This document shows, one piece after another, positions 13,880 to 54,809 of a stretch of DNA of 64,000 nt; within the stretch, counting starts at the first letter, position 1, and each line of letters starts with the position of its first letter. The stretch is from contig NC_052172.1 of assembly GCF_902713615.1 (NCBI RefSeq), positions 12,876,185-12,940,184 on the forward strand, in the 5' to 3' direction. Source of the stretch: Scyliorhinus canicula (taxonomy: Eukaryota). The notes under the pieces were generated by a model. The model saw nothing but the letters and a program-made list of their open reading frames with translations, had not been told where the DNA came from and searched no databases. Position numbers and translations under genes: made by a program.

Positions 13880-14431
13880 CTATTTGAGTTCTTTGATCTT
13901 CTCCTCCACCGAGGCGCGGCTGTCGTCCAGGACCTCGGCCACCTTCTTGCCCAGCTTGTAGAACTGGAAGGTGGGGATGTGGATGATGTCGCAGGCTTCG
14001 GCCGTGTCCTCCGAGTCGTCCACGTTCACCTCGTAGAACTGGACCATGGCGTTGAGCTGGGCCAGCTCCCGCATGATGGGCTTCAGCAGCTGGCACGTCT
14101 CGCACCAGGTGCCCGAGAAGAAGATGACCACCAGCCGCTCGCCCGCCTCCTTGATGAACTTGTCGAACTGGGTCTTGCTGTTGATGGTTTTGAGCGGGAC
14201 GCCCTCGGAGGCCTTGGCCGCCGGCGGGCCCGCCTTGTCCCGCGTCGGCCGCCCCTTGTCCAGCGGCCCGGCCGCCGCCGCCGGCGCCCCCACGCGCGAG
14301 GGCCCTCCGCCCACCTCGCCGGGCGAGTGGGGCGCCCGGTTCTGCGAGGCGCCCGCCCTCTCGGCGGCCGGCGGCGGCGCCTTGCCCTGCGCCTTCTTGG
14401 GCTTGCCCAGCGTGCTGCCCGCGCCCGCCAT
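13880..14431 (-). CDS. Thioredoxin-like protein A (183 aa): ~78-aa Ala/Gly/Pro/Lys-rich N-terminal extension plus Trx domain, active site WCETC
   Basis: ORF aligns to TXN (INSKTQFDKFIKEAGERLVVIFFSGTWCETC...VQFYEVNVDD...HIPTFQFYKLGKKV). ATG at 14431 in strong Kozak context (agcaccATGG); uninterrupted frame, high GC3; AATAAA on the minus strand at 13405-13410. Confidence 0.88.
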   Translation of the reverse strand: MAGAGSTLGKPKKAQGKAPPPAAERAGASQNRAPHSPGEVGGGPSRVGAPAAAAGPLDKGRPTRDKAGPPAAKASEGVPLKTINSKTQFDKFIKEAGERLVVIFFSGTWCETCQLLKPIMRELAQLNAMVQFYEVNVDDSEDTAEACDIIHIPTFQFYKLGKKVAEVLDDSRASVEEKIKELK

Positions 14432-14439
14432 GGTGCTCT

Positions 14440-14900
14440 GCCAGGCGCGCGCCGCCCCGCCCGCGACCCTCGTTGTGACGTCACCCGCCCCCCAGCGTCC
14501 CATGCCGCGACCTCGCGCCATTGGCCCCCTGTCAAGAGGGCCCCGCCCCCCTCCGACCCGCACCCGCCAATCGGCGTCGAGCTACTGGGCCGCCTCGTGC
14601 CGCATTCAAATTCAGACGAAAGGGCGTCACCGATTCCGTGATTGGGGCTGTCGATTACCCAATCAATGCTGAAGGGGCGGTGACGGACAGGCGGTTGACC
14701 TATCACAACGTGTGTGTGTGGAGGCGGCTTCGTGTTGAAAAGCGCGGGACGTCTGCCGGGAGCGTGCGCAGGTGGGCCGGCTCTCCGGCAAGAGAACGGA
14801 AGTGACGTCAGCAACACGCACCGCCCACCCCCGATTGGACGGCCCCGCCTCTGTGTCGTCACCAAGGACGCCTTGGTGACCGTATCCGCGCGACGGGAGA
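14440..14900 (-). promoter_or_regulatory. CpG-rich promoter of Trx-like A: CREs, CCAAT boxes, GC boxes, ETS-CRE composite
   Basis: TGACGTCA at 14476-14483 and 14803-14810 (the second within CGGAAGTGACGTCA); ATTGG at 14520 and further CCAAT/ATTGG sites; several CCCGCC. Confidence 0.7.
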
Positions 14901-15194
14901 TTGGCAGCTCCACTGCCGAGGGGATCAGGAGCGTCAATGAGCAAAGACACTGGAGGGAGGGTGAGGTCACCCAGGATGGGCTAACACGGGACATATGCAA
15001 TTTAGTGAAGAGTGGGTGTAAAGTGATACAGTTTGGGAGAACAAAATTCCAATTTTTAAAAGGTGCTGGAATTAAAAATAACCGGAGATCCAGAGGCAAT
15101 CTCCAGGATAGCAGGCTTTAAAAAAAAAATAATTATTCTACTTGGAATAAATTTAACTTAAAGAGTCTTTTAACTTTAAGTCATAGAATTTACA

Positions 15195-16076
15195 TAGAAG
15201 GCAATGGAGGCCAAATCACTGAGTGATCAATAAGGGGATTAAGGGTAATGGGGAGAAGGCAGGAGAATCATAGAATTATCATAGAATTTACAATGCAGAA
15301 GGAGGCCATTCGGCCCATCGAGTCTGCACCTGCTCTTGGAAAGAGCACCCTACCCAAGGTCAACACCTCCACCCTATCCCCATAACCCAGTAACCCCACC
15401 CAACACTAAGGGCAATTTTGGACACTAAGGGGAATTTATCATGGCCAATCCGCCTAACTTGTACATAGAACATAGAACATAGAACAGTACAGCACAGAAC
15501 AGGCCCTTCGGCCCTCAATGTTGTGCCGAGCCATGATCACCCTACTCAAACCCACGTATCCACCCTATACCCGTAACCCAACAACCCCCCCCCCCCCCTT
15601 AACCTTACTTATTATTAGGACACTACGGGCAATTTAGCATAGCCAATCCACCTAACCCGCACATCTTTGGACTGTGGGAGGAAACCGGAGCACCCGGAGG
15701 AAACCCACGCACACAGGGGGAGGACGTGCAGACTCCACACAGACAGTGAGCCAGCCGGGAATCGAACCTGGGACCCTGGAGCTGTGAAGCATTTATGCTA
15801 ACCACCATGCTACCCTGCTGCCCAACATCTTTGGACTGTGGGAGGAAACCAGAGCACCCGGAGGAAACCCACGCAGACACGGGGAGGATGTGCAGACTCC
15901 GCACAGACCCGAGTCGGAATCGAACCTGGGACCCTGGAGCTGTGAAGCAATTGTGCTATCCACAATGCTACCATGCTGCCCTTGGGGATGCGAAACATAT
16001 CATCCATGATTGAAGGGCAGAGCAGACTGGATGGGTCGAGTGGCTTAATTATGCTCCTATGTCTTATGGTCTTATA
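15195..16076. mobile_element. Triple nest: CR1 3' tail > type-B SINE (about 15268-15981, -) > type-A SINE (about 15467-15824, -)
   Basis: The outer SINE breaks at ...ctaacttgtacat and resumes acatctttggactg; the CR1 tail resumes at about 15982. Confidence 0.85.
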
Positions 16077-16728
16077 GTGCAATGCAGTGGAACCAGTAAG
16101 AAATAGTGACATTGTATGTGGTTGACAAGTTACTTCATCTCCTCTACAGTCATAGTTTGTTAAGTAAAAACAATATTATACTTTTTTCTAAACTTGTTTA
16201 AATTACTAACAAAATGGGAATATATATAAAACAAAGTTTATGTGTCAATGTAAGGATTTGCATGTTCAACTGAAATGGGTTTGATTTTCAGCAATAAAAA
16301 GTCATAAACTTGGAAAAATCAGTTATTGGGAATAAAGTTTCAAAGAAACAAAAAGAATGCCGGTCACAACCGGCCTTTAAATATGAACGATGTAGTCTTT
16401 CCGCCAGGGGCAGCGGCAGAGAGAAGGTTGTGCGCCCAGCACTAGACTGACACCATGCACCCTGTGCACCCGTGTACGTGCCAGGCCCATGTGCAAAATC
16501 GTGGAGGTAAGGTTCCTCCATTTTGTAGCTGCCAGCTGGCAAGCAACAGGACTGCGTGAAGAACTGAAGATGGATCATTTTGTAAAAAGGAAGAGGGGGG
16601 GCCTGAGACACATACAGGCAAGGATCATACAACTGAATCTACTGGAGAGAGCTTCACAAGAGAGTCTACGGCAGATAAGCAGTGATGCTGTGAGCTGTAT
16701 ACAGAGCCCCAGGGCCTCTGGTGAACAA

Positions 16729-17371
16729 TGTTATGGGCCAGGGTTTAAAAACTCCAAAGAGTATTGTGGAGTCCACCTGACCTATAACATTTTATGTTGA
16801 ATTTGGCTGGGATGAGCATAAGAGCCTGCCTTTCAGGTGTTATTCAACAGACTTCTTAGGCGCATTTAAATCAAAAAACAAGCTTTATTCTAAGAATTTA
16901 GTTAACATTTGAATAACACAGAGCAAAAATGTTTATCAATTCTGAACATAAAAACTCCACACAGCTGCAGTAATCTATGTATAACCCTTAATGAATTCCC
17001 CCTTAACTGTTCCAATTCAATAACAAAATCCTAGTAAAACCAGAAACCCCTTTTCAAAGGTGTGGCCCAGCACACAGCATTCTCATTGGTATAAAATATG
17101 TTATTGATCCTCTGTTCCCCTTTTCAAACAGCAGGGTTGAATTCCTTCCAGAAAGCAATTGTCTCTTTTAAGTTACCAAGTCGTCTGGAACAGCTTTTAA
17201 AAATGAAGATAGAGAAAAACACTTCTTTCAAACTTGTGCAGTTCAAAACCAGTCCAAACTCAAAGCGAAAATAAAACCCACAGAGCCAAAGCCCAGCTCC
17301 ACCCAAACAATGACATCATTGAAGCCATGTGATAAGACAAAAACATTTCTTTAAGGGATACTCTCGTGACA
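16729..17371. mobile_element. Solo LTR with 4-bp TSD
   Basis: Starts tgttatg, ends cgtgaca; acaa on both flanks (16725-16728, 17372-17375); splits the transposase remnant. Confidence 0.75.
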
Positions 17372-17473
17372 ACAACCCATTAAGAAGAAACTGAAATCAG
17401 GAACAAAGCAGTATAAAGATGATTTCTGGAGCTATGGCTTTACTGTCAATTATTCTTTTGTCTACCATGTATG

Positions 17474-17802
17474 GGGCAGCACGGTGGTTAGCATAAATGC
17501 TTCACAGCTCCAGGGTCCCAGGTTCGATTCCCGGCTGGGTCACTGTCTGTGTGGAGTCTGCACGTCCTCCCCGTGTGTGCGTGGGTTTCCTCCGGGTGCT
17601 CCGGTTTCCTCCCACAGTCCAAAGATGTGCAGGTTAGGTGGATTGGGCACGCTAAATTGCCCGTAGTGTCCTAAATAAGTAAGGTTAAGGGGGGGTTGTT
17701 GGGTTACGGGTATAGGGTGGATACGTGGGTTTGAGTAGGGTGATCATTGCTCGGCACAACATCGAGGGCCGAAGGGCCTGTTCTGTGCTGTACTGTTCTA
17801 TG
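17474..17802 (+). mobile_element. HE1/V-SINE-type SINE (type A)
   Basis: tRNA-like head (ggttcgattcc), V-domain, tail ggccgaagggcctgttctgtgctgtactgttctatg. Confidence 0.9.
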
Positions 17803-18259
17803 TACGTACTGTGTATGTTCCCTTGGCCGCAGAAAAATACTTTTCACTGTACTTCGGTACATGTGACAATAAATATCAATCAATTGTGCCGGTGCCAATC
17901 ACAATGCAAAGCTCATATGTGTTATATGCAGGGTAGTACCGGCAAATAAAAGTTTAAAACCCTCAAATCTTCAAAAGCATTCAAAAGCATGGTGAGTTTG
18001 AGGACAAACCTCTTGATTTTTTTTCAAAGAATGCAGCAAGAATTTAAATCATCAGCTGAAGGCCTCAGGAGAAATGTAATATTGAAGTGAGATTGTGAGG
18101 ACCAAGCAGGCTCACCTGTTACATAAAGGTAAGTCGTAATGGTGTGTCGCTAAAGTGGGCCCGCATGGGTCACTAATGTTGGCTAGTGTGGGTCCCCAAG
18201 GGTCACCGGTTGGGAAAAATGGGTCCTGGGCAAAAAAAGATTGACAAACACTGACCTAA

Positions 18260-18710
18260 GATGTGTGACTGCCTCCTGACACACTGCATCCTGATGTGTT
18301 GCAATGCCTGAAGCTCAGACTCCAGCTCATTAAGACCTAAGATATAGGAGCAGAATTAGGCCTCTTGGCCCATCGAGTCTGCTCCGCCATTCAATCATGG
18401 CTGATATGTTTCTCATCCCCATTCTCCTGCCTTCTCCCCATAACCCCTGATCCCCTTATTAATCAAGAATTAATCTCAGTCTTAAAGACACTTGATGTGG
18501 CCTCCACAGCCTTCTGCAGCAAAGAGTTCCACAGATTCACCACCCGCTGGCTGAAGAAATTCCTCCTCATCTCTTTAGTCTGAGATTATATCCTCTGGCT
18601 CTAGCTCTGAGCCGAAGTTCCTCGAGCAACAGACGTGGTCGCTAGGAAGCGGGTCGATCAGCTCCCACATGTTCCAGCTACAATACATCGCCTGGCCCTG
18701 CATCCCTATC
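18260..18710 (-). mobile_element. CR1 fragments (3' tail piece within an ORF1-like remnant)
   Basis: STAFCSKEFHRFTTRWLKKFLLIS is the antisense reading of the CR1 3' end. Confidence 0.6.
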
Positions 18711-18905
18711 TTATTTCATTAGAATTTATTTAATTTAGAACTTCAATTTGATTTTACTTATACCACTAATCTTTACTTCCTGCAATTTCTGTTCCCTACC
18801 TAGCTTTCACTTCCATAGTCTGAAAGGTGGAAGAGAGACTCCCCTAGCAGTCACTTACCTGCGATATCGCAAAGACATGTTCTCTCTCTGTACTGTAACG
18901 CTATT

Positions 18906-19083
18906 GAAATGAAAATGAAATGAAAATCGCTGATTGTCACGAGTAGGCTTCAATGAAGCTACTGTGGAAAGCCCCTAGTCGCCACATTCCGGCGCCTGTC
19001 CGGGGAGGCTGGTACGGGAATCGAACCGTGCTGCTGACCTGCTTTAAAAGCCAGTGATTTAGCTCAGTGAGCTAAACCAGCCT
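18906..19083 (-). mobile_element. Type-E short SINE
   Basis: Matches 2757-2925. Confidence 0.8.
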
Positions 19084-19379
19084 CGTTGCAACTTATGCCC
19101 CAGCTGTTCTGCCTTAGCCTGCACCTACCCTCACTGGCCTTGACTCCCAGCACTCAGAGCCTCTCTCCACGCTGTTACTCCTCTGAAGTTGCTCTCTCTC
19201 CTCCCCCTGCTGTTTTAACTTGCCGGATCTGCCTCTCTCCACGTATCTCTATTTCTTTTTCCAATTTGCAGGTTAAATCTGTTGCCGATTTCTCTACTAT
19301 GCTCTTCACTCTGGCTCTGTTCCAATTAGGGCAATCAGTGAATTTGCCTTCTTTCTATATTGTCTATGTCCGAATGCTT

Positions 19380-21822: not shown

Positions 21823-21839
21823 TGACTTTTCAGTTTACC

Positions 21840-23470: not shown

Positions 23471-24738
23471 GTACCTAGACTGGTGAGTGGGCTGCATGAG
23501 TGGCCCTCCCTCATCTCAGTGGGTCACAAGATTGAAATCGGGCTTGTTCACTCTCACCCCCATGAATAAGATTAAATACATTTAATACATGTCAAATATT
23601 TCACAACGTGTTTTAGAAGATGCTTCACCATTTATATATTAATAGAACTGTCACCAACTTCAAATGGTAAAAGCAAAATATTTACTTTGGACCTGGAGGG
23701 GACGCACGGCTCTCACAATCGATGTTGTGAGCAATCAGCATGCACCTCACTTCACTCGGCCCTCACTTCACTCTCCCCTCACTTCACGTGTGAATCACCT
23801 CAGCCATACCGGCAGGAAACAAAACTACACAAACACAAATCAGCAAAATGTGGTGACCCTGTGTATGGGCAACGGTTAACAAAATGTCCCGTGAGGGGGG
23901 CTGTACTCAGTGCTCAGATGGGCCATATGTGGCCCCCAGGCCGCAAGTTGCCCATTGCTGCCCCAACCCATCTTCACCGGTCGAGAAAATTTTGCCCAAT
24001 GTTACATCAATGAAACATGGATTGACTCTATTTAAGATACAATTTAACATTAATGAGATAGTCTTTGATATTATTTATGATACAATGAAGTGTTGTTGGG
24101 TGACGGGGGATTGAGCAGAAGTGGTGGGACTAATTGGACAACTCTTTCAAAATGCATCACAAAATAGGAACAGAAGTAGACATATGGCTCGTTGTGCAAG
24201 CTTCATCAACTCCGCTTTCCCCGCCCACTCCCCATATTCCTTAATTCAGAATCAAGAGAGCCCAAAAAGCCACCGATCCCAGCCTTAAACATATTCAACC
24301 ATGGGTCATTCACAACCCTCTGGGGCAGGGAATTCCAAAGACTCACAACCCTTTGAGTGAAGATATTTCATCTTATCTCAGCCCTAAATGACTGGCTCCC
24401 TTGATGCGACGGCAATAAATACCCCCACGTTTTTAAAATTCCCCACCAAGTGGAAAGATCTCTCCCAGTCTACCCTGTTCAGAATTTCGTCTGAAGATCC
24501 CCAGTCATTTTTCAAACTCAGCCTCTCATCTCGAGGGCCCAATTTAGGGAGCCTTCGCTGTGCTTGCCTGCAATGCTGGTGCAATCCTTTCTTAAATATG
24601 CAGACTAACACTGCACCCAGCATTCCAGCGCCGGTTTGCTGGGGCTCACGACCTCTTTGCTGTAAGATTCTAGAAATGCAACCATTCACAGATCAGGGGA
24701 ATTTAATTATTATGTTTTTTTTCTCCTTCGGGTGAAAA

Positions 24739-25059
24739 TTACTTCAGTCGCATTAGCAGATGGTCCAACTTGTCCCTCTTGGTGCCCGTGAACTCTGCAA
24801 CTTTTGCTTGGCAGCTGTAGAAGTGGAAGGTGGGCATGCAGGTGATGCCCGCCGCCCGGGACAGATCCTCCGACTCATCCACGTCCACCTCCACGAAGAT
24901 CACGTCGCGGAACTGGTCGGACCTCATGTGGAAGAAGGGCTTGATGCTGGAGCAATTGTTGCACCATCGGGCCCCGAAGAAGACGACGATGAGCGTCTCC
25001 TCCTCCTCCTGCAGCAACGTCTCGAACTGCTTGCGTGTCTTGATGTGCCTCAGGACCAT
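24739..25059 (-). CDS. Thioredoxin-like protein B (106 aa), active site WCNNC
   Basis: MVLRHIKTRKQF...LIVVFFGARWCNNC..IKPFFH..VIFVEVDVD..GITCMPTFHF..KVAEFTG is colinear with vertebrate TXN. Kozak ggcagtATGG; ATTAAA (minus) at 24702-24707. Confidence 0.9.
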   Translation of the reverse strand: MVLRHIKTRKQFETLLQEEEETLIVVFFGARWCNNCSSIKPFFHMRSDQFRDVIFVEVDVDESEDLSRAAGITCMPTFHFYSCQAKVAEFTGTKRDKLDHLLMRLK

Positions 25060-25399
25060 ACTGCCCCCTGTTTGTTCACTGTGTGAGTGTGTGTTGAGGG
25101 CAGCCCCAGCCCTGCCTGGCCTCTCTGACTGCCCTCCCACACCCCGATAGTGACGAGAAATCAACGTCAGGTAAGCCTTTTGCAGCCAGCGTGTACCCCC
25201 CCACCCCTTCACCACCCCACACCCACTCACCCACTCCCCGGCCAGCCTGAGGAACCCCAAGGTTCAGCGGCAGAAAGGTGTCCGGCCAGCTCGGCTTGGC
25301 AGCAGAGGGCTGAGCGAGCGCCCGGGTGAAAGAACTGGCGCCAGCAGCAGCTACAACCGCTGCAGATTTTATCAATGAATGAAAGTCAGCAACACATTC

Positions 25400-25540
25400 A
25401 GGAACCGCCCCCGCCCCTCCCTGATTGGCCCAATGTTGCCATTCGGCGGCCCAATCGGAATGGGCAGCGCGCTTCCGCTTGTGGAAGCTACGCTTTGATT
25501 GGCCGCTGGAATCCTTCCCCTTTATGACGTCACGTCAAAA
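25400..25540 (-). promoter_or_regulatory. Putative promoter of Trx-like B (CRE, CCAAT, GC boxes)
   Basis: TGACGTCA at 25525-25532; ATTGG/CCAAT cluster at about 25424-25502; ccgcccccgcccc at about 25405. Confidence 0.6.
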
Positions 25541-25659
25541 AGCGAGAGTACAGTGCTGAAGGAGGCCATTCAGTCCGTCCAGCCTCTGCACTCACTCTCT
25601 GAAAGAGCACCCGAACCTAGACCCAGCCCCCACCCCAGGATCTTCAGACTTCTATTCTT

Positions 25660-26935
25660 CTGCCTGATGGAAAGGTCTGGAAGACTACAAGCCCAGTGGT
25701 GTTCCGCAGGGATCAGTGTTTGGGCCCATGGCTGTTTGTAATTTATATCAATTATTTAGGCTTAAATGTAAATTGATCAGTAAATTTGCAGATGATACAA
25801 AAATTGGTGGGGTGGTAAATAGTGAGGAGGATAGCTTCAGATTACAGGAGGATATGGACAGACTGGTCAGATGGACTGATCAGTGGCAAATGGAATTCAA
25901 TCTGGATAGGTGTGAGGTGATGCACTTGGGTAGGACAATAGAAGGCAAAGGAATACATGATAAATGGCAAGACCCTGGGAAGCACCGAGGATCAGACACC
26001 TTGGTGTGCATGTATACCGGCCCCATAAGGTAGCAGGGCAGGTAGATAGAGTGGATAGGAAGGTATATGGTATACTTGCGTTATTAGCCGAGGCATAGAG
26101 TTTAAGAGAAGGGAGGTTATACTGGAGCTATAAAATGTTGGTTAGGCCACAGCTAACAGTATTGTGTGCAGTTCTGGAATCCACATTATAGGTGGCATGT
26201 GGAAAGGGTGCAGAGGAGATTTACCAGGATGTTGTCTGGACTGGAGAGTTTTAGCTATGAAGAGAGATTGGATAGACTGGGGTTATTTTCCTTGGAGCAG
26301 AGGAGACTGGGGGGGGGGGGGCATAATTGAAATGTATAAAATTATGAGGGGCATCAGGGCAGCATGGTGGTGCAGTGGTTGGCACGGATACCTCACGCGC
26401 CGAGGTCCCAGGTTCGATCCCGGCTCCGGATCACTGTCCGTGTGAAGTTTGCACATTCTCCTCGTGTTTGTGTGGGTATCGCCCCCACAACCCAAAGATG
26501 TGCAGGTTAGGTGGATTGGCCACACTAAATTGCCCCTTAATTGGTAAAAATGAATTGGGTACTCTAAATATCAAAAAAAAATTATGAGGGGCATAGAGTA
26601 GACATCAAGAATCGTTTCACCTTGGGGAGGGATCAATAACCAGGGGGCTTAGATTTAAGGCTAGCGGCAGGAAGTTTAGAGGGGATGCGAGGGAAAACTG
26701 TTTTACCCAGAGGGTGGTGGGAGTTTGGAACTCACTGCCTGAAAGGATGGTGGAGCAGAAATCCTCATAACATTTAAGAAGGATTTAGATGAGCACTTGC
26801 GATGCCAAGGCACACAAGGCTATGGGCCAAGTGCTGGAAAGTGGGATTAGAATAGTTAGGTGGTTGTTTTTGACTGGCACAGATCTGATGGGCCGAAGGA
26901 CCTTTTCTGTGCTGTAGACCTCTATGGCATGCTGA
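25660..26935 (+). mobile_element. Degraded CR1 3' portion containing a type-C SINE (about 26357-26580)
   Basis: [27 protein letters not shown]; the SINE is flanked by aaaattatgaggggcat (26338-26354, 26578-26594). Confidence 0.88.
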
Positions 26936-32609: not shown

Positions 32610-33830
32610 GTAAGAGAGGAGAGAGTGTAAGAGAGAGATGGGAGGGTGTGATCGAGTGTGTGAATGGGAGAGGGAAGAATGTGTGAGTGAGTGTGTACAT
32701 GAGGGAAGAGTGTGTGTGTGTGTGGTAGGCTATATTAGGGGTATCACGGTACCTAGGTGGGATGCACCTTATACTGTAGTATGAATGGTAGAACCTGCCT
32801 GCTGGTTCCGCCCAGCAGGCGGAGCATAAGTGTCTGTGTTTCACCCACAGCAGTCATTCTGTACCAGAGCTGCCGGGGTAACTACTTGTTCATTAAAGCC
32901 TTCAATTGGACTCCAATCTCGCTTCAGTAGTGATTGATTGTGCATCAGTGTGTATGAGGGGGGAGTGGGTGAGTGAGTGTCAGAGGGGAGTATGAGTGAG
33001 GGAAGGAGTGTGAGAGGGAGTGTGAGTGGGTGAGGGAGAAGTGAAGAGTGGGTGTGAGAGGGAGGAGTGTGAGTGGGTGTGAGACGGAGGAGTGTGAGTG
33101 GGTGTGAGGGAAGAGTGTATGTGTGTGTGTGAGAGAGGGGAGTGTGTGAATGAGTGCCAGAGGGGAGTATGAGTGAGGGGAGGAGTGTGAGAGGGTGAGG
33201 GAGGAGAGTGAGTGGGTGTGAGAGGGAGGAGTGTGAGGCAGGAGGGTGAGTGGGTGTGAGACGGAGGAGTGTCAGTGGGAGGAGTGGGAGGGAGGAGTGT
33301 GAGAGGGAGGAGTGTGAGTGGGTGTGAGGGAAGAGTGTATGTGTGTGTGTGAGAGAGGGGAGTGTGCGAATGAGTGCCAGAGGGGAGTATGAGTGAGGGA
33401 GGAGTGTGAGAGGGTGAGGGAGGAGAGTGAGTGGGTGTGAGGGAGGAGTGTTTTGGGAGGAGAGTGAGTGGGTGTGAAAGGGAGGAGTGTGAGTGGGTGT
33501 GAGGGAGGAGTGTGAGAGGGAGAAGTGAGAGGGAGTGTGAGTGGGTGTGAGGGAGGAGAGTGTGGGTGTGAGAGAGGGGTGTGAGGGTGGAGTGTGAGTA
33601 GGTGTGAGAGGGAGGAGTGTGAGAGGGAGGAGTGTGAGAGGGAGGTGAGAGAGAGAAGTGTGAGTGGGTGTGAGGGAGGAGTGTGAGTAGGTGTGAGAGG
33701 GAGGAGTGTGAGTGAGTGAGAGGGGGACTGTGAGTGAGTGTGTGTGGGGGGGGGAGTGCAAGTCACACAGTATGTGACTAAGTGTATGTGAATGAGTGTG
33801 TGCATGTAGAGAGTCTGTGTGTGTCTGACT
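32610..33830. repeat. Cryptic (GAGTGT/GAGG) low-complexity satellite with internal higher-order duplication
   Basis: Recurrent gagggaggagtgtgagtgggtgtga; the block near 33090-33230 is repeated near 33310-33440. Confidence 0.9.
32721..32947 (+). mobile_element. Small solo LTR inserted in the GT-rich repeat
   Basis: tgtggtag...attaaag...gattgtgcatca; the 3' end resembles the other LTR ends here (gcatca). Confidence 0.6.
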
Positions 33831-34416
33831 CACTAACAGTTTCAGGGTACTCCTTCGCCTTCACCCCCACCCAGTGGGTGAGAGTTAGTGAGTGAGCACC
33901 CGAGACCAGGAGTGAGCCACACACACCTTCTCACACCCAATGGTCATCTCTATTTACTCATTTGAAAAAAAACCATCATCAGTTTATTGCTTTGACATTG
34001 TTTTGATCAGCAAGTTGTTCTTTATTTTTGAAATTCACATTTAATGTGCCAAACCGTATCTTTCCAAAATTTGCTCATTAACCTTTGATTGAGGCAAATA
34101 ATTGAAATTTGCCTCCCTGTTTACACACACCCTGTGAAAAGGACAGATACGCTGGAATTACAACATCCTGAGATGGTGATTGATGCTCCATTAATACAAG
34201 ACCTTCCTTTTACCACTAGTAACAGAATAACTCGGCAATTTGTAAATCATTTCCACTGTAATCATCCCTACTGAGAGAACGACTACAGGAACAGTTAGTC
34301 TAACTTGACGAGAGAGATGAGCAATGGGTCACTGGGCGGAGTGCTCCGGTCATCGTGATTCACTTTTTCAGTTGCAGCGCACCCCCCGCCCAGGGGTTTC
34401 CCGGCGGTGTGGGGTG

Positions 34417-41734: not shown

Positions 41735-42641
41735 AGAGATTTTATATATTAGGTCCTTCCCCCTCTTCTCCGAATTCCAACTGTCTCCAAACTCCCAATT
41801 AAGCTACTCTTTTCGAATGGCACTCCGTTTCTGAACTGCTCTGCGGCCGAGTACTATTCAACCACATCTCATATCGTGCAATGGTACATCCATTGAATGT
41901 GATAGGCACTATATAAAGGCTGACACTTTCTTCTTTTAAACATTTAGAGTACCCTATTCTTTTTTTTTCCAATTAAGGGGCAATTTAGCGTGGCCAATTC
42001 CCCCACACGGCACATCATTGTGTTCTGGGGATGCAACCCACGCAGGCAGGGGGCGAATATGGCGAACTCTTTCCTAATGTGTAATTGCAAGCTCCCCCAT
42101 GAGTCAGTCCTGAACCAAAATACAGCAGCTGGATAGTCCGTCGGCGGAATCTTCCGTTTCGCCGGCAGCAAACTCACGCCTGCGGATTTCCCGATGACAT
42201 GGGGGCGTCCATAATGGGAAACCCCATTGGTCGACTGCCAGGGCAGAAAGTCCCACTGCTGGCGGGGGCGCGCCACATCCGAAAACGGGTACGGTGGGAG
42301 GGAGAATCCCACCCTTGGTGTTTAAGCATCCCGTTACAACCTTTCCCAAATCCTATTTGATGCCCATAACCGTCGTGGGCAACTCTAAACTGCTCTCAGA
42401 AATGGCCAAGCAAGCTGCATCAGATAAACCACAATTGCAACGTTCAAGAAGGCGTCCCACCATCAGGTCAACTGGGCTCACCCCAAAAAAATGAGTTTTG
42501 AAAATTGCTTCCCTTATTTCCTCTGGCTGTTATACTTTTAGTTGCAGTTTTATTTATCCAGAAAATTCAAACTTCGTTTTTTTTCTTTCGTGTTTTTCTA
42601 GTCTATTTTTTGTTTAAACTTTTAACAGGTCCCCCCTCCTC

Positions 42642-42959
42642 TCACTGCAGCTCGTCCAGGAGGCGCTCCAGCCTGTCCCTCTTGGTGCCCGAGAACTCGC
42701 CCATCTTGGCGGAGCGCTTGAAGAAGTGGAAGGTTGGCATGCAGGTGATGCCGGCCGACCGGGCCATGGGCTCGGCGTCATCCACGTCCACCTCCACGAA
42801 GACGACGTTGGCCATCTGCTCGGAGAGGTTGTAGAAGTGCGGCCGGATCAGGCGGCAGTTGCTGCACCACTCGGCCGAGTACATGACCACCACCAGCTGC
42901 TCGGTCTGGCTCAGCAGGGCGGTCAGCTGCTTGGCGTCCTCCACGTGTCTCACCACCAT
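42642..42959 (-). CDS. Thioredoxin-like protein C (105 aa), active site WCSNC
   Basis: LVVVMYSAEWCSNC..IRPHF..VVFVEVDVDD..GITCMPTFHFFK..KMGEFSG matches the TXN fold. Kozak ggcagcATGG; AATAAA (minus) at 42549-42554. Confidence 0.9.
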   Translation of the reverse strand: MVVRHVEDAKQLTALLSQTEQLVVVMYSAEWCSNCRLIRPHFYNLSEQMANVVFVEVDVDDAEPMARSAGITCMPTFHFFKRSAKMGEFSGTKRDRLERLLDELQ

Positions 42960-42964
42960 GCTGC

Positions 42965-43200
42965 CGCTTCCGGGTCCCTGGCCCCACTGGCCCCGCCCTC
43001 CTCAGCAATCACCCCCTCCCATTGTGACCAGCCCCCCATTGTGACGTCAATTGGCCGATTCTCATTGGCCGCTGCAGATTGCTACTTACTTTCTTATGAA
43101 TGGGCCCGCGAGGGCAGCGGCTCCATTGGGTGGAAGGCGGCTGATTGATGGGGCGGGGAGCCAATCAGACGGGGGGGGCTTTTCCTGGCCGCCTCGACGC
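42965..43200 (-). promoter_or_regulatory. Putative promoter of Trx-like C (CRE abutting a CCAAT box)
   Basis: TGACGTCA at 43042-43049 immediately followed by ATTGG at 43050-43054; more ATTGG/CCAAT at 43064, about 43125 and about 43161; GC boxes. Confidence 0.7.
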
Positions 43201-45732: not shown

Positions 45733-45929
45733 TGTGAGGCACGAAAGTGACGTCAGTAATCAAAGGCTTTAATAAACAGAGAACAGGGCAGCATCCAAGA
45801 GAAGTGTGCTCGCAAAATGGAGTCTCATCTTAAATACTATTTCCAGGGGGCGTAGCCAGAGGCGGAGTCCCCCAGGGTTCCAAGCCTCTTAAAGGGGCAA
45901 GGTATTAAAGGTAAATACCGATCATCACA
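45733..45929 (-). mobile_element. Small solo LTR in an older LINE/SINE tail
   Basis: TG...CA ends, ATTAAA on the minus strand, contains TGACGTCA; the host sequence resumes after it. Confidence 0.5.
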
Positions 45930-46999: not shown

Positions 47000-49725
47000 T
47001 GATGCGACCATCAATTCACTCAAGACACGAGTGGAAGTAAACTGTGGCTTTAATCGACTTACAACTGAGCCTGCCTGCGACCAGAAGAACTAAGGACAGG
47101 CTCACAAGACCGCAGCACTTTATACTTCCGGTATTGGGAGGAGCCATGGGCAGAGCCAAGATTGGAGCCCTGTACATGCTCCCCATCACCCCCTATGGGC
47201 AGAGCCACGCAACGGCTCACAGATGGAGCCCACAGGGACACAGTGATATACAGTGTGAATTATACGCATTATACATTCACCTCATTCACCCCCTGTAAAA
47301 AAAATCAAGTCCGGCGGGGGTGACGGGTCTACAGATTGAGTTGGTCCGGTGTCCGAATCGTCCGCTGGGATCTGCGGAGCACCTGGTTTGCAGCCGCTTC
47401 AGATGGCTGGGTGCTGATGTCCGGTGTGAATCTGAGGGTGGACTCCGGGGGTGGTTCGTTCAGAGCTTCGTTCCTGACCGGTGCGATGGGCGAAAGGGGG
47501 CGCAGGAAACCTGTTGGCGCAGGGCGTGGGGGGCCTGGTGGGGTGTAGTGTGAGGGGTATCTCAGCTGTGGTGGTGGTAGTGGTGGTGGATCCTGCAGGC
47601 GCCAGGTCCCAGAGGGAAACGGTGTCCTGCCGGCCATCAGGGTGTTCGATAAAGGCACAGTGGTGGTTTGAATGTAGCAGTAGTACCCTCGCTACCAGCG
47701 GGTCAGTTTTATGTGTCCGGACGTGCTTCCGGAGGAGAACCGGGCCCGGTGTCCTCAACCAAGATGGAAGCAAGGCCCCCGTGGTAGTGCCCCTAGGGAA
47801 AACAAATAATCGCTCGTCAGGAGTCTGATTAGTGGCCATACACAGGAGGGACCTAATTGCATGGAGCGCGTCTGGGAGGACCTCCTGCCAGTGGGAGGTC
47901 GGGAGATTGCTGGACCGGAGGGTCAGTAGGACAGTCTTCCAGACCGTCGCGTTCTCCCTCTCCACTTGCCCGTTCCCCCTGGGGTTATAGCTGGTAGTCC
48001 TGCTCGAGGCAATGCCCTTGTCGAGCAGGTACTGACGCAGCTCGTCACTCATGAAGGACGAACCCCTGTCACTGTGGACGTAGCTGGGGAAACCAAACAG
48101 GGTGAAGACACTGTGCAGGGCTCTGATGACTGTATGGGAGGTCATATCGGGGCACGGGATGGCAAACGGGAAGTGCAAGATTTCATGTATAGTGTTAAGA
48201 AAATAGATATTACGGTTGGTCGAGGGGAGGGGCCCTTTGAACTCAATACTTAGTCGTTCAAAGGGCCGGGATGCCTTTACCAGGTGGGCCTTGTCTGGTC
48301 TATAGAAGTGCGGTTTGCACTCCGCACAGATCGGGCAATCCCTGGTGACGGCTTTGACCTCCTCGGTGGAGAAAGGCAGATTTCGGGCTTTGATGTAATG
48401 GGCGAGCTGGGTGACCCCCGGGTGGCAGAGGTCATTGTGGAGAGCCTGTAATCGGTCGTCTTGCGCGCTGGCGCATGTGCCGCGGGACAGGGCATCTGGG
48501 GGCTCGTTGAGCTTCCCCGGTCGATATATGATGTCATAATTATAGGCGGAGAGTTCGATCCTCCACCTCAAGATTTTATCGCTTTTTATTTTGCCCCGTT
48601 GCGAGTTGTCGAACATGAAGGCAACCGATCTCTGGTCAGTGATGAGGGTGAACCTCCTACCTGTGAGGTAGTGTCTCCAGTGCCGTATGGCTTCCACAAT
48701 GGCTTGAGCTTCTTTTTCGACTGAGGAGTGTCGAACTTCTGAAGCGGAGAGGGTCTGGGAGAAGAACGCTACTGGCCTACCTGCCTGGTTCAGAGTGGCA
48801 GCGAGAGCGACCTCTGAGGCGTCGCTCTCCACCTGAAAGGGGACAAATTCATCCACCGCCTGCATGGCGGCTTTGGCGATGTCCTCCTTGATGCAGTTGA
48901 AGGCCCGGCGGGCCTCAGCTGACAGTGGGAATAGTGTGGTCTTAAATAGTGGGCAGGCTTTGTCCGCGTACTGGGGGACCCACTGGGCGTAATAGGAGAA
49001 GAATCCAAGGCACCTCTTGAGGGCCCTGGAACAGTGAGGGAGAGGGAGTTGTAAGAGGGGGCGCATACGGTCCGGGTCAGGCCCCAGGACCCCGTTTTCC
49101 ACAACATAGCCGAGGATGGCTAGCCTGGTTGTGCGGAAAACGCATTTCTCCTTGTTGTATGTGAGGTTGAGTTTTTTGGGCGGTTTGGAGAAATCGGTGG
49201 AGGTTGGCGTCGTGGTCCTGCTGGTCATGGCCGCAGATGGTGACGTTATCCAAGTACAGAAACGTGGCCCGCAGCCCGTACTGGTCCACCATTCGGTCCA
49301 TTGCTCGTTGGAACACCGAGACCACAGTCGTGACGCCAAAGGGGACCCGGAGGAAATGGAAGAGGCGGCCATCTGCCTCGAATGCTGTGTAGTGGCGGTC
49401 CTCCGGGCGGATTGGGAGCTGGTGGTAAGCAGACTTCAGATCCACCGTGGAGAAGATGGAGTAAAGAAGATGCGGTACTGGGCAATCTGGTTGACCATGT
49501 CTGCAATTCTGGGGAGGGGGTACGCATCGAGGTGTGTGAACTGGTTAATGGTTTGGCTGTAATCAACCACCATCCGGAACTTGCTCTCCAGGGGCTATTA
49601 CTGGCCTCTATGACTCCCTCACGTAGGAGCCGCTGGACTTCGGGTCTAATAAATACCCTGTCCTGCAGGCTGTACCGCCTGCTGCGAGTGGCTACGGGTT
49701 TGCAGTTAGCGGTGAGGTTGGCGAA
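47000..49725 (-). mobile_element. 5'-truncated Ty3/Gypsy LTR retrotransposon (RT-RNase H-integrase plus 3' LTR 47000-47284)
   Basis: DLKSAYHQ, YLDNV, RNase H ESDAS..LITDQ, integrase HHCC (LHNDLCHPG..CPIC), HSDRG, GQVER; polypurine tract agggggtgaa before the LTR; frameshifted. Confidence 0.93.
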
Positions 49726-49751
49726 GTCGAACCTGTTGGACTTTAACCTGG

Positions 49752-49964
49752 TGTTGTAAGACTTCTTACTGTGCACACCTGTATTAGGTAGGACCTGTAC
49801 TACAGGTTCGCCGGTCGCCCCTGCCGGCTGGCTCCGCCCAGTAGGAGGAGCATGTCCTCTATTCAACAGCCATTTCGCCAGCTGCTGTGGGAGGCTACAC
49901 ATCTGACTGCAATAAAGCCTCAGTTGTATCCAACCTTAGTCTTTGTACAATTGATCGTGCATCA
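49752..49964 (+). mobile_element. Unrelated small LTR at the truncation point of the Gypsy copy
   Basis: tgttgtaag...aataaag...gatcgtgcatca. Confidence 0.55.
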
Positions 49965-50089
49965 CAGATATGTTATATTGTATGTATTTCGAGTATCCAA
50001 TTTATTTTTTCCAATTAAGGAGCAATTTAGCGTGGCCAATCCACCCACCTTGCACATCTTTTGGGTTGAGGGGGCGGAACCCACACAAA

Positions 50090-51272
50090 CACGGGGGTTC
50101 TCCGTTTCTGAGACTAAGTGTTGACGTCAACGCAGAATTCGTAGACTTTCACAGCAGCCAATCTGGTGCTGCACCTGGACCGATTCAGTTACTGTTAAGG
50201 GGCAAAAACCAGTGCCGCGTGGAACACAATTGATTCCAAGGAAAAAACGGTGCGGGATTCGCCGGGTCCATGATTGACACTCAGGAAGCTGAGAAGCTGC
50301 AGCCGCATATACACACTTCACTCCCCACACACACTCATCCCAGCCAACAAGATGGCACTGGTTGTGCTGGGGCACATTCATACAGCTGATGGGTCGGCTG
50401 GGGCCAGAGGGTACCCAGGGGAGTGACATAGAACATAGAACAGTACAGCACAGAACAGGCCCTTCGGCCCTCGATGTTGTGCCGAGCAATGATCACCCTA
50501 CTCAAAGCCACGTATCCACCCGATACCCGTAACCCAACAACTCCCCCCCTTAACCTTACTTTTTAGGACACTACGGGCAATTTAGCATGGCCAATCCACC
50601 TAACCCGCACATCTTTGGACTGTGGGAGGAAACCGGAGCACCCGGAGGAAACCCACGCACACACGGGGAGGACGTGCAGACTCCACACAGACAGTGACCC
50701 AGCCGGGAATCGAACCTGGGACCCTGGAGCTGTGAAGCATTTATGCTAACCACCATGCTACCTGCTGACGTGGAGGGGACACCCATATGACCCGCGGCAC
50801 TAAGTTCACAGCTGCGGCAATGCTGTTCCGTGTCTGTCCACCCCGACCCCATAGCTCACCTTCTGGCCAACCCCCGCTATTCCCCCCCCCCCCGGGTCCT
50901 GGCAGAAGCTCCCCAGGGAATGGCACAACTGTCAGTACACTATGGCAATATTGGCTTTCCATACCCCCTCTCTCTCCCCATCAGCAGCCACCATGTTGGT
51001 TTCAAGATTTCTAAAAGCACATGTGAACCGCACCGTTGGGAACTCGGCCCATCGGAGCAGAATCGGGAAGGCCCCAGAGAATACTGGGTTGGGCCCACTA
51101 ATGATATGCCAAAGGAGTTTACTGTGCGTGCATGCCGGAACGCATTAGTACCACTGTCGAGGTGATGGAGAATCGCGATTTGGTGTCAAATCGGCGCCCA
51201 CCATGATTTTGCCGTAGGAGCTGATTCTCCGCCCAATCGTGTTTTGGCATCGGCCAACAGAGAATCCCGCCC
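50090..51272. mobile_element. GC-rich TIR element interrupted by a type-A SINE (about 50427-50764, -)
   Basis: Right end gagaatcccgccc; full SINE inside. Confidence 0.65.
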
Positions 51273-51807
51273 ATTGTGTTTGCTCTTCGGAAGGTGATGC
51301 AGTTACCAGGGGTTGAAGCAGTCAGCTGTTGAGTTTCAGTTTGCGGTTTTAGTTCAGACCAGCAACTTTCCTCAAAGCAACGGTTAAAATGATTTTTCCT
51401 GTGAACACAGGCAAGAATCTGAAGCTGGTTCCTGAAGGGTTACTCTGAGAGAGTCTTTATTCCAAAATATCTCTTTACAGCAACTATCCCTGGGTTGTAT
51501 TTAAAAATGGATTTTGACCTGAGATGGGTTTTGCTAGAATGGAGAGAAAAGGTAACAGTTTGGATTTTGTGTTTCATGTTATAGTTAAGCATTGCTGAAG
51601 ATCATGGAATTGATCATAGAATTTACAGTGCAGAAGAAGGCCATTCGACCCATCAAGTCTGCACTGGCTCTTGGAAAGAGCACCCCACCCAAGGTCCACA
51701 CCTCCACCGTATCCCCATAACCCAGTAACCCCACCCAACACTGTCCTAAATTACTGAACTGGTAATTATGAGGTATTTTTCTTTGTGATATTAAAGTTAG
51801 TAAAACT

Positions 51808-52856
51808 CCCACAGGGGAGATGAGGAGCATGTACAGGGCTCCACCGTGGCTCCGCCCATAACTCCACCCACAACCGGAAGTATAAAGTGCTGCGGTCTTG
51901 TGAGTGTACCCTCAGTTCTTCTGGTTGCAGGCAGGCTCAGTTGTAAATTGATTAAAGCCACAGTTTACTTCAACTCGTGTCTCTGAGTGAATTGATGGTC
52001 GCAGGAATCTGGAATCTCCTGACCTCCCACTGGCAGGAGGTCCTCCCCAACGCGCTCCATGCAATTAGGTCCCTCCTGTGTATGGCCACTAATCAGACTC
52101 CTCACGAGCGATTATTTGTTTTCCCTAGGGGCACTACCACGGGGGCCTCGCTTCCATCCTGGTTGAGGACACCAGGCCCTGTCCTCCTTCGGAAGCACGT
52201 CCGGACACATAAAACAGACCCGCTGGTAGAGAGGGTCCTACTCCTGCATTCAAACCCCCACTACGGGTTTATCGAGCACCCTGACGGCCAGCAGGACACC
52301 GTTTCCCTCCGGGACCTGGCACCTGCAGGATCTACCACTACTGCCGAGGTACCCCTCACACCACACCCGATCCCCCACGCCCTGCGTCCCTGCACCTACA
52401 GGTATCCTGCGCCCCCTTTCACCCGTCACACCGGTCAGGAACAAAGCTCTGGAAGAACCATCCCCGGATTCACATCGAACATCTGCACACACCCATCCGA
52501 AGCGGCTGCATCTCCAGTGCTCCGCCGGTCCCAGTGAACGATTCGAGCACCGGACCAACTAAACCTATCGACCCGTCACCCCCGCCGGACTTGATTTTTT
52601 TAACACGGGGTGAATGTATAATATAAATTCACACTGTATATCACTGTGTCCCCCATCTGTGAGCCGTTGCGCGGCTCTGCCCACAGGGGGAGATGAGGAG
52701 CATGTACAGGGCTCCGCCCACAACCGGAAGTATAAAGTGCTGCGGTCTTGTGAGTCTGCCCTCGGTTCTTCTGGTCGAAGGCAGGCTCAGTTGTAAGCTG
52801 ATTAAAGCCACAGTTTACTTCAACTCGTGTCTCTGAGTGAATTGATGGTCGCATCA
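51808..52856 (+). mobile_element. Second, internally deleted copy of the same Gypsy family (partial LTR, integrase C-terminus, LTR about 52615-52856), inside another LTR-like sequence
   Basis: WQEVLPNALHAIRSLLCMATNQTP nearly identical to the 47399-49372 ORF; LTR ends gatggtcgcatca. Confidence 0.9.
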
Positions 52857-53369
52857 CTGTGTTAATAATAAAGTTTGTTTTAATACACTGTATCCCTGTG
52901 TGTTAGTGTGTGTGTGCGCGAGTTGAATCAATCCTGGAGCGAAGTATCCTTTCCTCACAGTTTTACAAACAAAATAAAATATTGGGGTTTCTGTCAATAT
53001 TGTCCTAGCAACTGCTGGGGTCTAGTCCGGGATCATAAAAATAGGCTGGGGTTGTCTGGCTGTTGACATGCTGGCGGGATCTTCTGGTCCCAACGAAAGC
53101 GCACCCTCGCCCCGGTTTCCGGTCCCCGTCTCTTAGAAATAGTGGCATGCGATCTTTTACACCTAAGTGGGCAGACAGGGCCTTGATTTTACACCTCATC
53201 CGAAAGTCAGCCTATCCAGAGTGTCAGATTGTGTACCGAAAACCTGGAGTGCATATCTGTCACTGGACATCAATGTGCAACCCACTGAGTCAAGGCCGAG
53301 GTCTGCCATAACAATTGGGTTGCCAACTGTGATTAAATGCTTTTTCACATGGCTTTCCTCCCACCCTTT

Positions 53370-53687
53370 GAACATTGAACATACAGTGCAGAAGGAGGCC
53401 ATTTGGCCCATCGAGTCTGCACCGACCCATTTAAGCCCTCACTTCCACCCTATGCCCGTAACCCAATAACCCCTCCCAACATTTTTCGGACACTAGGGGC
53501 AATTTAGCATGGCCAATCCGCCTAACCTGCACGTCTTTGGACTGTGGGAAGACACTGAAGCACCCGGAGGCAACCCACGCAGACACAGGGAGAACGTGCA
53601 GACTCCGCAGACAGTGACCCAGCAGGGAATCGAACCTGGGACCCTGGCACTGTGTGAAGCCACAGTGCTAACCACGATGCTACCGTG
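53370..53687 (-). mobile_element. V-SINE-type SINE
   Basis: Full head, V-domain and tail. Confidence 0.85.
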
Positions 53688-53949
53688 CACGCTCCAGTCA
53701 TTTGTCAGCCAACACATCTGTCCTAGTGATCCATGGCCTTCCGACACAATTGGAAAGCAAAAAAACTCATTACCCAATTGGATGATGCTTGACTGTCAGT
53801 GAAACAGCCTTTCCCCCCTTCCCCATTTTTCATATTCTTATACTGTATCAGGTAAAGAGCTCAAAGAAAATGTCAGAAAACATGTTTCTTCAGGGTTGCA
53901 CAGAGCAGTGCCCTAGGGATTGATTTAAAACTTTTAGGGATTGGCCATC

Positions 53950-54157
53950 AATCCCAGCGGATTGTAATCGCCCTTCAACCCCTGTGGATCGTAATCGCCC
54001 TTCAACCCCTGTGGATTGTAATCGCCCTTCAACCCCTGTGGATTGTAATTGTCCGTCAATCCCTATGGATTGTAATCGTCCGTCAATCCCTGTGGATTGT
54101 CATCGTCCGTCAATCCCTGTGGATTGGGATCGCCCTTCAATCCCGGGGGATTGGGAT
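53950..54157. repeat. 27-bp minisatellite (ggattgtaatcgcccttcaacccctgt), about 7-8 copies
   Basis: Direct read; translates as repeated DCNRPSTPV. Confidence 0.92.
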
Positions 54158-54207
54158 CTCGGCAGAGGGAGGGCAACGTGCGATGACAGTGGACACCAAA
54201 GTGGAGC

Positions 54208-54415
54208 GGGGCAGTATGTTGTCACAGTGGTTAGCACTGCTGCCTCACGGCACCAAGGTCCCAGGTTCGATCCCAGTCGGTCACTGTCCGTGTGGACTTT
54301 GCACATTCTCCCAGTGTTTGCGTGGGTTTCGCCCCCACAACCCAAAGATGTGCAGGGTAGGTGGATTGGCCGCACTAAATTGCCCCTTAATTGGGGGTAA
54401 AATGTATTTGGAAAA
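54208..54415 (+). mobile_element. Type-C SINE ending about 25 bp from the Trx-like D stop codon
   Basis: tRNA head, cgcccccacaacccaaagatg, aaattgccccttaattgg. Confidence 0.8.
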
Positions 54416-54440
54416 AAGCCAAGCGGGAGCCAGGAGCCGT

Positions 54441-54809
54441 CTAGGTCTTGCCGGGGTTTAATTTCGGCGGGCACTGGGAGCCGTCCCCCTGCAGCTTCTG
54501 GATCATTCGCTCCAGGAGGCAGCGGTTGGGCCCCTTGAACTGGAAGATCTTGACGCCGCTCTTGAAGAACTGGAAGGTGGGGAACCACTCGACGCGGCAG
54601 CGCTGCACCACGTCCCTGGCCACGCCGATGTCCACCTCATAGAAGGCAACGTCCGGGTAGCCCTCGGCGAACTGGTCAAAGTTGAGCTGTATCATCTGGC
54701 AGAACTCGCACCAGTTGGCGGAGTACAGCACCACCACCAGCTGCTGCTCGCCCGCCTCCAGCGCCGCGTCCAGCTCCGCACAGTTCTTAATGTTGCCGAT
54801 CACACCCAT
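54441..54809 (-). CDS. Thioredoxin-like protein D (122 aa), active site WCEFC, short C-terminal extension
   Basis: ELDAALEAGEQQLVVVLYSANWCEFC..VAFYEVDI..FPTFQFFKSGVKIFQFKGPN matches TXN. Kozak gggcaATGG; intact frame. Confidence 0.87.
   Translation of the reverse strand: MGVIGNIKNCAELDAALEAGEQQLVVVLYSANWCEFCQMIQLNFDQFAEGYPDVAFYEVDIGVARDVVQRCRVEWFPTFQFFKSGVKIFQFKGPNRCLLERMIQKLQGDGSQCPPKLNPGKT

Follow-up and report, generated by a model that had tools for sequence, protein, structure and literature searches.

A conserved cluster of four intronless thioredoxin-like genes with altered active sites in cartilaginous fishes

We analyzed a 64-kb stretch of the Scyliorhinus canicula genome (contig NC_052172.1, positions 12,876,185 to 12,940,184 of the forward strand), hereafter the window, whose positions we count from its first letter and which contains no N. 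It harbors four intact single-exon open reading frames (ORFs) for thioredoxin (Trx)-like proteins, all on the minus strand, which we call genes A, B, C and D. Gene A (13880-14431, stop codon included) encodes 183 amino acids (aa), starts with MAGAGS as do all its orthologs, and carries the motif WCETC; gene B (24739-25059) encodes 106 aa with WCNNC; gene C (42642-42959) encodes 105 aa with WCSNC; and gene D (54441-54809) encodes 122 aa with WCEFC, an invariant FQFKGPNRCLLERMIQKLQG and a disordered C-terminal tail. The four proteins match the Pfam family PF00085 with E-values of 2e-17, 1e-18, 1e-21 and 8e-17, respectively. The original prediction, which was made from the letters of this DNA, had described four intact minus-strand TXN-like ORFs with good Kozak contexts, three of them followed by a poly(A) signal. 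The genes are indeed present at these places, and every start has a purine at -3 and a G at +4, but canonical AATAAA or ATTAAA hexamers within 400 nt past the stop are present only for B (ATTAAA, +32, 24702-24707, minus strand) and C (AATAAA, +88, 42549-42554, minus strand). Longer GTG- or TTG-initiated ORFs of A and B are used in no annotated ortholog, and a 227-aa ORF of A starting from GTG is not the gene, as the orthologs start with MAGAGS. B and C are 52.8% identical, in line with the earlier manual estimate of about 53% for the closest pair, whereas every other pair of paralogs is 30-38% identical. C is the copy nearest to TXN1, and its alignment to the human protein covers residues 13-104 without gaps (phmmer E-value 1e-28). 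No further Trx remnant or fifth copy was detected in the window outside A-D by tblastn at an E-value below 5. Divergently from D lies an intact single-exon gene for a 275-aa SERTA-domain protein (61105-61932, plus strand; PF06031, E-value 4e-15).

In a word-indexed search of 5.8 billion proteins, relatives of A, C and D were found exclusively in chondrichthyans. C has orthologs in Scyliorhinus torazame (93% identity), Chiloscyllium (90%), Heptranchias (80%), the rays Pristis, Amblyraja and Mobula (81-84%) and Callorhinchus (54-61%). A has orthologs in nine sharks and rays (51-87% identity), D has six (59-74%), and those of B occur in Narcine, Rhincodon, Chiloscyllium, Hemiscyllium, Stegostoma, Pristis and Callorhinchus (P0011, P0054, P0010 and L004:412-732 being B orthologs). 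Intact ORFs are thus seen in more than 15 species of sharks, rays and one chimaera, where they are annotated as "thioredoxin-like" or "hypothetical", and some copies of A as "TXNDC2-like". The order of the genes is conserved as well. In Pristis pectinata, D (9,900,068), C (9,911,064), B (9,923,095) and A (9,932,684) lie on one strand with a divergent SERTA-domain gene upstream of D; the Carcharodon locus contains SERTA, D and C, with SERTA in the same position and orientation as in the window; the Hemiscyllium locus contains D and C; and in S. torazame B is located 8.3 kb upstream of A. At one end of a 9.8-kb contig of Callorhinchus lies the 3' half of C, followed by B, A (WCETC) and, on the opposite strand, BLVRB, named by its match to human biliverdin-IX beta reductase (E-value 2e-15); the contig ends inside C, and D is therefore known from elasmobranchs only. 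The conserved arrangement is SERTA / D-C-B-A / BLVRB, and the synteny with the SERTA gene, which the original prediction had raised, is kept in Pristis and Carcharodon. In human, SERTAD1, SERTAD3 and BLVRB belong to one 80-kb block, and the genes listed for it (PLD3, HIPK4, PRX, SERTAD1, SERTAD3 and BLVRB) include no thioredoxin, hence not TXNDC2 either (PMC5025747). As A, B and C are all present in Callorhinchus, they must have split from one another before chimaeras separated from elasmobranchs.

One Callorhinchus gene model is at odds with the genomic contig. In the UniProt model P0008, an N-terminal half resembling C is fused to the C-terminal half of B, which is identical in P0010, and alternative first exons could have accounted for this. 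We dropped that idea, for contig L002 (1-1150) encodes a different C-terminus of C's own, only about 600 bp upstream of B, and P0008 is therefore probably a chimeric gene model, or else a read-through transcript.

We searched 1.84 billion representative proteins with a profile built from the family. Of the single-domain matches, representatives of A, B, C and D scored 129-158 bits, followed by WCGPC thioredoxins and mammalian TXNDC2 and TXNDC8 at no more than 135 bits. The best 150 matches, many of which are multi-domain and may hide weaker members, contained no non-chondrichthyan protein with the A-D motifs, and look-alikes of A and D in the ESM Atlas fell only into generic thioredoxin clusters. 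The two large protein searches, with no members elsewhere, are consistent with a restriction of the family to cartilaginous fishes, although they are not a proof of it. A "thioredoxin-like" protein of the frog Ascaphus, which shares FYKCQKKVGEFSG with B, was considered as a tetrapod member and rejected, as its gene is multi-exon and the protein has WCGPC and Asp26 and groups with TXN and TXNDC8. In the maximum-likelihood tree of 51 sequences and 106 columns, the canonical chondrichthyan TXN not being among them, each paralog is monophyletic (support 100/98 for A, 99/98 for B, 98/87 for C and 100/99 for D), and B and C are sisters (100/97). TXNDC2 forms a clade of its own beside mammalian TXN, and neither TXNDC2 nor TXNDC8 groups with A-D in the best tree, which agrees with the expectation of a clade separate from these two proteins.

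To evaluate the constraint on the four genes we computed the ratio of nonsynonymous to synonymous substitution rates (dN/dS) by the Nei-Gojobori method (NG86), with codon-bootstrap intervals; all these values are rough. Between the window and Pristis, the ratio is 0.21 (0.11-0.37) for the Trx domain of A, 0.14 (0.07-0.25) for B and 0.30 (0.13-0.65) for C, and pairs of B with Callorhinchus gave 0.18-0.24 (0.09-0.41). The N-terminal part of A has a ratio of 0.72, not distinguishable from 1. For D, three pairs with Pristis and Amblyraja gave 0.45-0.68, and one of the three intervals excludes 1. Independently of dN/dS, the active-site motifs and long blocks are invariant within each paralog, and these comparisons indicate that A-D are under purifying selection. 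The proposal that the copies are old, diverged and kept by selection is thus borne out by the orthologs in sharks and rays (for A, B and C also in Callorhinchus), by their common order and single-exon state, by ratios below 1 for all four genes, though in two of the three D pairs with intervals reaching 1, and by the RNA data described below. The high G+C content at third codon positions (GC3) and the retained CpGs were also recovered: GC3 is 0.97, 0.88, 0.97 and 0.92 for A-D, with CpG observed/expected ratios of 0.76-0.94, against a G+C content of 0.49 and a CpG ratio of 0.51 in the whole window, and the ray and chimaera orthologs have a GC3 of 0.80-0.96 against 0.43-0.54 G+C in their loci. 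Biased gene conversion or selection for expression of an intronless mRNA could account for so extreme a GC3.

Few redox enzymes are as well understood as thioredoxin, whose WCGPC/Asp26 site is almost invariant in cytosolic forms. None of A-D has the canonical WCGPC. The motif in all orthologs is WCETC for A, WC[NSG]NC for B, WC[STNGA]NC for C and WCEFC for D, and the buried Asp26 is replaced in every ortholog, by Phe in A and B, Met in C and Leu in D. The residue before the cis-Pro is Ile in A, Met in B and C, and Phe in D. On the other hand, W31, C32, C35 and P75-T76-F77 are invariant in 24 sequences. A model of D (predicted local distance difference test score, pLDDT, 85.8) superimposes on human TXN1 with a template-modeling (TM) score of 0.97 and a root-mean-square deviation of 0.7 Å, the two proteins being 41% identical in the structural alignment; D also has two extra cysteines and a 20-residue motif in the C-terminal helix that are invariant, and Pro40 is lost. 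None of A-D has a signal peptide-like N-terminus, and B, C and D begin at strand 1 as TXN1 does. TXN1 resembles A-D in fold, Trp-Cys-x-x-Cys, cis-Pro loop and C-terminal helix, and C also in its length of 105 aa, but differs from them by its WCGPC and Asp26 and by its five exons (as in a frog TXN-like gene), while A-D have no introns, lie in the SERTAD-BLVRB neighborhood and form four copies that are 30-53% identical to one another. Across the Trx superfamily, redox potential and substrate interaction shift with the X-X dipeptide and with the residue before the cis-Pro (PMC2665069), and a role as the activating base of Cys35 has been suggested for Asp26 (PMC9598160). As the Trx fold, the Trp-Cys-x-x-Cys motif and the cis-Pro are kept, these proteins are most likely still active in thiol-disulfide exchange, either in the cytosol or in the nucleus. 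Since the dipeptides (ET, xN and EF) and the residue before the cis-Pro are specific to the paralogs, and Asp26 is missing, they probably have a shifted, less reducing redox potential, slower resolving and substrates of their own, and would not be spare copies of TXN1.

The usual vertebrate TXN has five exons. In the Ascaphus TXN-like gene (P0121), which spans 7.7-10 kb, the exons end at codons 8, 43, 63 and about 86, and none of the chondrichthyan copies examined has a break in the reading frame at any of these four junctions. The span of the gene equals the length of the coding sequence in Pristis, Callorhinchus, S. torazame, Carcharodon, Hemiscyllium and Amblyraja. Neither a poly(A) tract nor a target-site duplication was seen in the flanks of A-D, and such relics are not expected to last for more than 400 million years (My).

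The upstream regions of the genes share a set of elements. There are six sites of the palindromic cAMP response element (CRE) TGACGTCA in the window, where 0.53 would be expected; none of 100 shuffles reached six, and four of the six sites lie upstream of Trx genes, namely, at 14476-14483 and 14803-14810 for A (-52 and -379 from the ATG), 25525-25532 for B (-473) and 43042-43049 for C (-90). The other two, at 45748-45755, within a GC-rich stretch located at about 44-46 kb of the window, upstream of C, and at 50122-50129, lie in no recognized gene. Among the ray orthologs, a CRE is found at -59 in Pristis A, -74 in Pristis C, -44 in Pristis D and -117 in Amblyraja D. The proximal promoter of A (14432-14581, minus strand) contains two CCAAT/ATTGG boxes, the CRE TGACGTCA and GC boxes; that of C (42960-43109, minus strand) contains CCAAT boxes, the CRE TGACGTCA, a second GTCACAATGGG element and a GC box; and that of D (54803-55185, minus strand) consists of a 112-bp unit repeated 3.3 times in tandem according to Tandem Repeats Finder, with a CRE-like GTGACGTC, CCAAT and GC boxes, elements which are also present in D of Pristis and Amblyraja. 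The order common to the A, C and D promoters is CCAAT/ATTGG, then (T)GACGTCAC(A/T)A, then a GC box, whereas the B orthologs retain only a CGTCAC core, a weaker CRE-like element. CGTCAC is present in eight of ten proximal 150-bp promoters, compared with a background of 0.059 per 150 bp. The earlier statement that the copies share no flanking sequence therefore holds for the long flanks, since blastn of 1.5-kb flanks returned only copies of a short interspersed element (SINE), but not for the proximal promoters, where A, C and D share the module and B the CGTCAC core. This common module indicates that the duplications carried about 150 bp of promoter, and that the rest of the flanks has since turned over. 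The SINE family, whose translation contains GPRFDSRLGHCLCGVCTSSPCVRGFPPGAPVSSHSPKMC, is dispersed over the window (53300-53700, 54230-54400 and many other sites); its copies explain all long flank-to-flank matches, and they reach a word depth of up to 1e5 in RNA runs.

All four genes are transcribed. A is present in about 14 RNA-labelled runs, five of them from a related species, with a share of up to 0.79, and C is present in 14 such runs; one run contains C but not A, and another A but not C. All of A-D occur together in samples S1 and S2, with B and D at high word depth. Contigs over B span 24730-25178 in run X1 (depth 52) and 24696-25110 in run X2 (depth 465), while the flanks are silent (depth 0 at 24535-24675 and 25193-25700), and the transcript ends about 12 nt beyond the ATTAAA. 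For D, a contig covers 54436-54771 in run X1 (word depth 170), positions 54508-54705 reach a word depth of 1500-1700 in run X2, and the 1.4 kb upstream has zero depth. Such sharp contig boundaries at B and D point to transcripts rather than contaminating DNA. The X2 contig leaves the genome at 25110, 51 nt upstream of the ATG of B, and continues for 29 extra letters. We rejected a splice in the 5' untranslated region (UTR) at this position, as the 29 letters occur nowhere in the window and there is no AG acceptor at the junction, which may be a unitig chimera or lead to a distant 5' exon.

Gene A differs in architecture. It consists of a conserved 17-residue N-terminus MAGAGSTLGKPKKAQGK, a linker of variable length and a C-terminal Trx domain, which starts at the equivalent of TXN Val2, and the alignment of its orthologs has 59 invariant columns. 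The linker is rich in Pro, Ala, Lys and Glu and plainly repetitive in Heptranchias and Pristiophorus; in Callorhinchus the extension is acidic and unrelated in sequence. In the AlphaFold model, residues 1-78 have a pLDDT below 50 and the Trx domain one of about 88, so that the N-terminal part is predicted to be disordered. A thus has the build of TXNDC2, in which a single intronless ORF encodes a C-terminal domain derived from TXN and, ahead of it, an N-terminal extension. The additional files of one study describe TXNDC2 as a TXN retrogene with 104 of the 105 parental residues, no parental Met, N-terminal repeats and the parental stop (PMC2584115, additional files). A and TXNDC2 (Sptrx-1) are alike in being intronless, in having no Met of their own for the Trx domain, in the parental stop and in a low-complexity extension, which is repetitive in some species. 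However, TXNDC2 retains WCGPC and usually Asp26, it groups with mammalian TXN in the best tree, and the two extensions have no sequence relation. A adjoins BLVRB, unlike TXNDC2, whose human gene is located on chromosome 18, and orthology of the two has no positive support. TXNDC8 (Sptrx-3) is, like the shark genes, a diverged TXN paralog of about 105 aa, in its case germline-restricted, but it has WCGPC and, in the sequence used, Glu at position 26, and it is separate from A-D in the tree; it is a multi-exon gene that arose by genomic duplication next to TXN. In Drosophila, TrxT and Deadhead are adjacent lineage-specific Trx paralogs with specialized sex-specific roles, an example of how Trx duplicates are recruited time and again to specialized tasks; these two, unlike the shark genes, have canonical CGPC sites, and their origin is unrelated. 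The parallel with sperm thioredoxins that the original prediction had drawn is so far architectural only, in the resemblance of A to TXNDC2.

Considering these results together, we favor with some confidence the explanation that the cluster is a gene family of cartilaginous fishes, more than 400 My old on published divergence dates, that descends from TXN and encodes redox proteins. A single TXN retrocopy is its likely but unproven founder. One processed copy of TXN1 would have landed between a SERTAD gene and BLVRB, acquired a TATA-less promoter with CCAAT, CRE and GC boxes, and lost the buried Asp26 and the Gly-Pro of WCGPC; it would then have been duplicated at the DNA level, promoter included, to give A, the pair of B and C, and D, gene A additionally gaining a disordered N-terminal extension. 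Several observations weigh against this explanation. The joint clade of A-D has a support of only 56/84, the join of A and D is flagged as a long-branch one, and forcing A together with TXNDC2 costs only 1.35 log-likelihood units (approximately unbiased test, p = 0.44) and is not rejected. With such weak deep support the tree alone cannot settle the deepest nodes, and a single origin gains weight because Asp26 and the Gly-Pro are replaced everywhere, introns are absent everywhere and the promoter module is common. The ratio for D is fairly high, with a bootstrap interval reaching 1 in two of three pairs, and the extreme GC3 limits synonymous change, which depresses dS and inflates all the ratios. 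The role of Asp26 itself is debated (PMC9598160), an old DNA-level duplicate of TXN with all introns lost may have been the parent, and the runs carry the label "RNA?" with coded samples.

The most skeptical reading, that the copies are neutral leftovers such as processed pseudogenes or annotation artefacts that are open by chance, might appeal to the shortness of these intronless ORFs and the transposon-rich DNA around them, but we give it a negligible probability: the ORFs are intact in more than 15 species and in conserved order, dN/dS is below 1, and RNA contigs have sharp gene boundaries, all of which rules it out. A different origin, without any retrocopy, would have an ancient segmental or whole-genome duplicate of TXN keep a TXN-like promoter, lose its four introns and expand in tandem. 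The promoter module common to the copies fits this scenario, as a processed copy normally arrives without one and the human TXN promoter has been reported to hold CRE and Sp1 sites, and so does the lack of a visible poly(A) tract or target-site duplication. Nonetheless it is unlikely in our view, because a single processed founder would leave each copy in each species without any of the four introns, as is observed, whereas stepwise loss needs four precise losses before the first duplication; TXNDC2 is a precedent showing that TXN mRNA does yield functional retrogenes; and a single acquisition before the tandem duplications explains the common promoter equally well. As for function, the proteins might no longer be oxidoreductases, with the CxxC serving for metal or iron-sulfur (Fe-S) binding or for a stable regulatory disulfide or complex, so that they would act as sensors or adaptors. 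The Gly-Pro and Asp26 are gone in all four, D has lost Pro40 and has its two extra invariant cysteines and invariant C-terminal helix motif, and in human Grx2, as in engineered E. coli Trx, Fe-S binding becomes possible when the active-site proline is replaced. Yet the invariant Trp31, cysteine pair and cis-Pro loop, in an unperturbed fold, amount to the full minimal catalytic set, and many active oxidoreductases have dipeptides other than Gly-Pro (PMC2665069). We thus regard a non-catalytic role as distinctly improbable, while active, specialized oxidoreductases appear to us the rather probable outcome.

A further reading concerns the place where the genes act and refines rather than excludes the explanation that we favor. 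A-D might constitute a germline (testis or spermatid) Trx system, convergent with Sptrx-1/-3 and TrxT/Deadhead, driven by CREM-type factors through the CRE and acting on disulfides of sperm chromatin or tail. This reading, which follows the parallel drawn in the original prediction, is a tentative possibility. It would accommodate the TXNDC2 construction of A, the conserved CRE that orthologs of A, C and D have 44-117 bp ahead of the ATG, the very short 3' UTR of B, the joint presence of A-D in samples S1 and S2 with B and D at high word depth while other samples show only A or only C, and the faster evolution of D relative to the other three genes. However, the coded samples of the RNA runs carry no tissue label; C, found in 14 runs from about ten samples, looks broadly expressed; CRE, CCAAT and GC boxes are equally typical of widely expressed genes; and the thioredoxin-domain protein named in the catshark sperm proteome paper is encoded elsewhere, at scyTo_0001399. 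The supplementary files of that proteome, which are possibly incomplete, yielded none of the locus tags of A-C. A germline role, as suggested by the TXNDC2-like build of A, the proximal CRE, the short 3' UTR of B and the occurrence of the four genes in the same two samples, would accordingly be put forward as a doubtful proposal, and its strongest form is slightly more doubtful still, namely, that four CRE-driven, co-regulated paralogs make up an independent germline system with oxidase- or isomerase-like sites, in which A would be a convergent replica of TXNDC2, for making or reducing disulfides in sperm or egg proteins. If that were true, the germline recruitment of Trx duplicates would be recurrent in sharks, mammals and flies.

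The rest of the window contains mobile elements and simple sequence. The neighboring long ORFs are, as the original prediction had it, those of transposons: a 421-aa ORF with a reverse transcriptase domain of a long interspersed element (8442-10440, minus strand) and, between C and D, a pol fragment of a long terminal repeat retroelement with a 657-aa ORF containing RNaseH and integrase domains (47399-49372, minus strand). At 32841-33833 there is about 1 kb of low-complexity DNA whose minus-strand translation consists of Thr/His/Ser/Leu/Pro repeats, and the 2-kb bin that holds it has a GC skew of 0.46.

The gene models are already in RefSeq as "thioredoxin-like", and in the literature we found no paper on the cluster, be it on how old it is, on its lack of introns, on the active-site signature or on the promoter; the novelty lies in recognizing the family, its age, the active-site signature and the promoter. 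Since the parallel with sperm thioredoxins is so far architectural only, the finding is less remarkable than the original prediction implied, and its practical value is modest, though it is worth a short comparative and biochemical study. The construction of A would suggest that the TXNDC2 type of gene may have arisen twice. The locus is also a very old case in which an apparently retrocopy-founded gene gained a promoter, expanded in tandem and persisted across a vertebrate class. It provides, in addition, a set of four naturally occurring versions of the TXN1 scaffold, all without Asp26 and each unchanged over hundreds of millions of years, and thus a natural experiment on how the X-X and pre-cis-Pro positions set redox potential and substrate choice.

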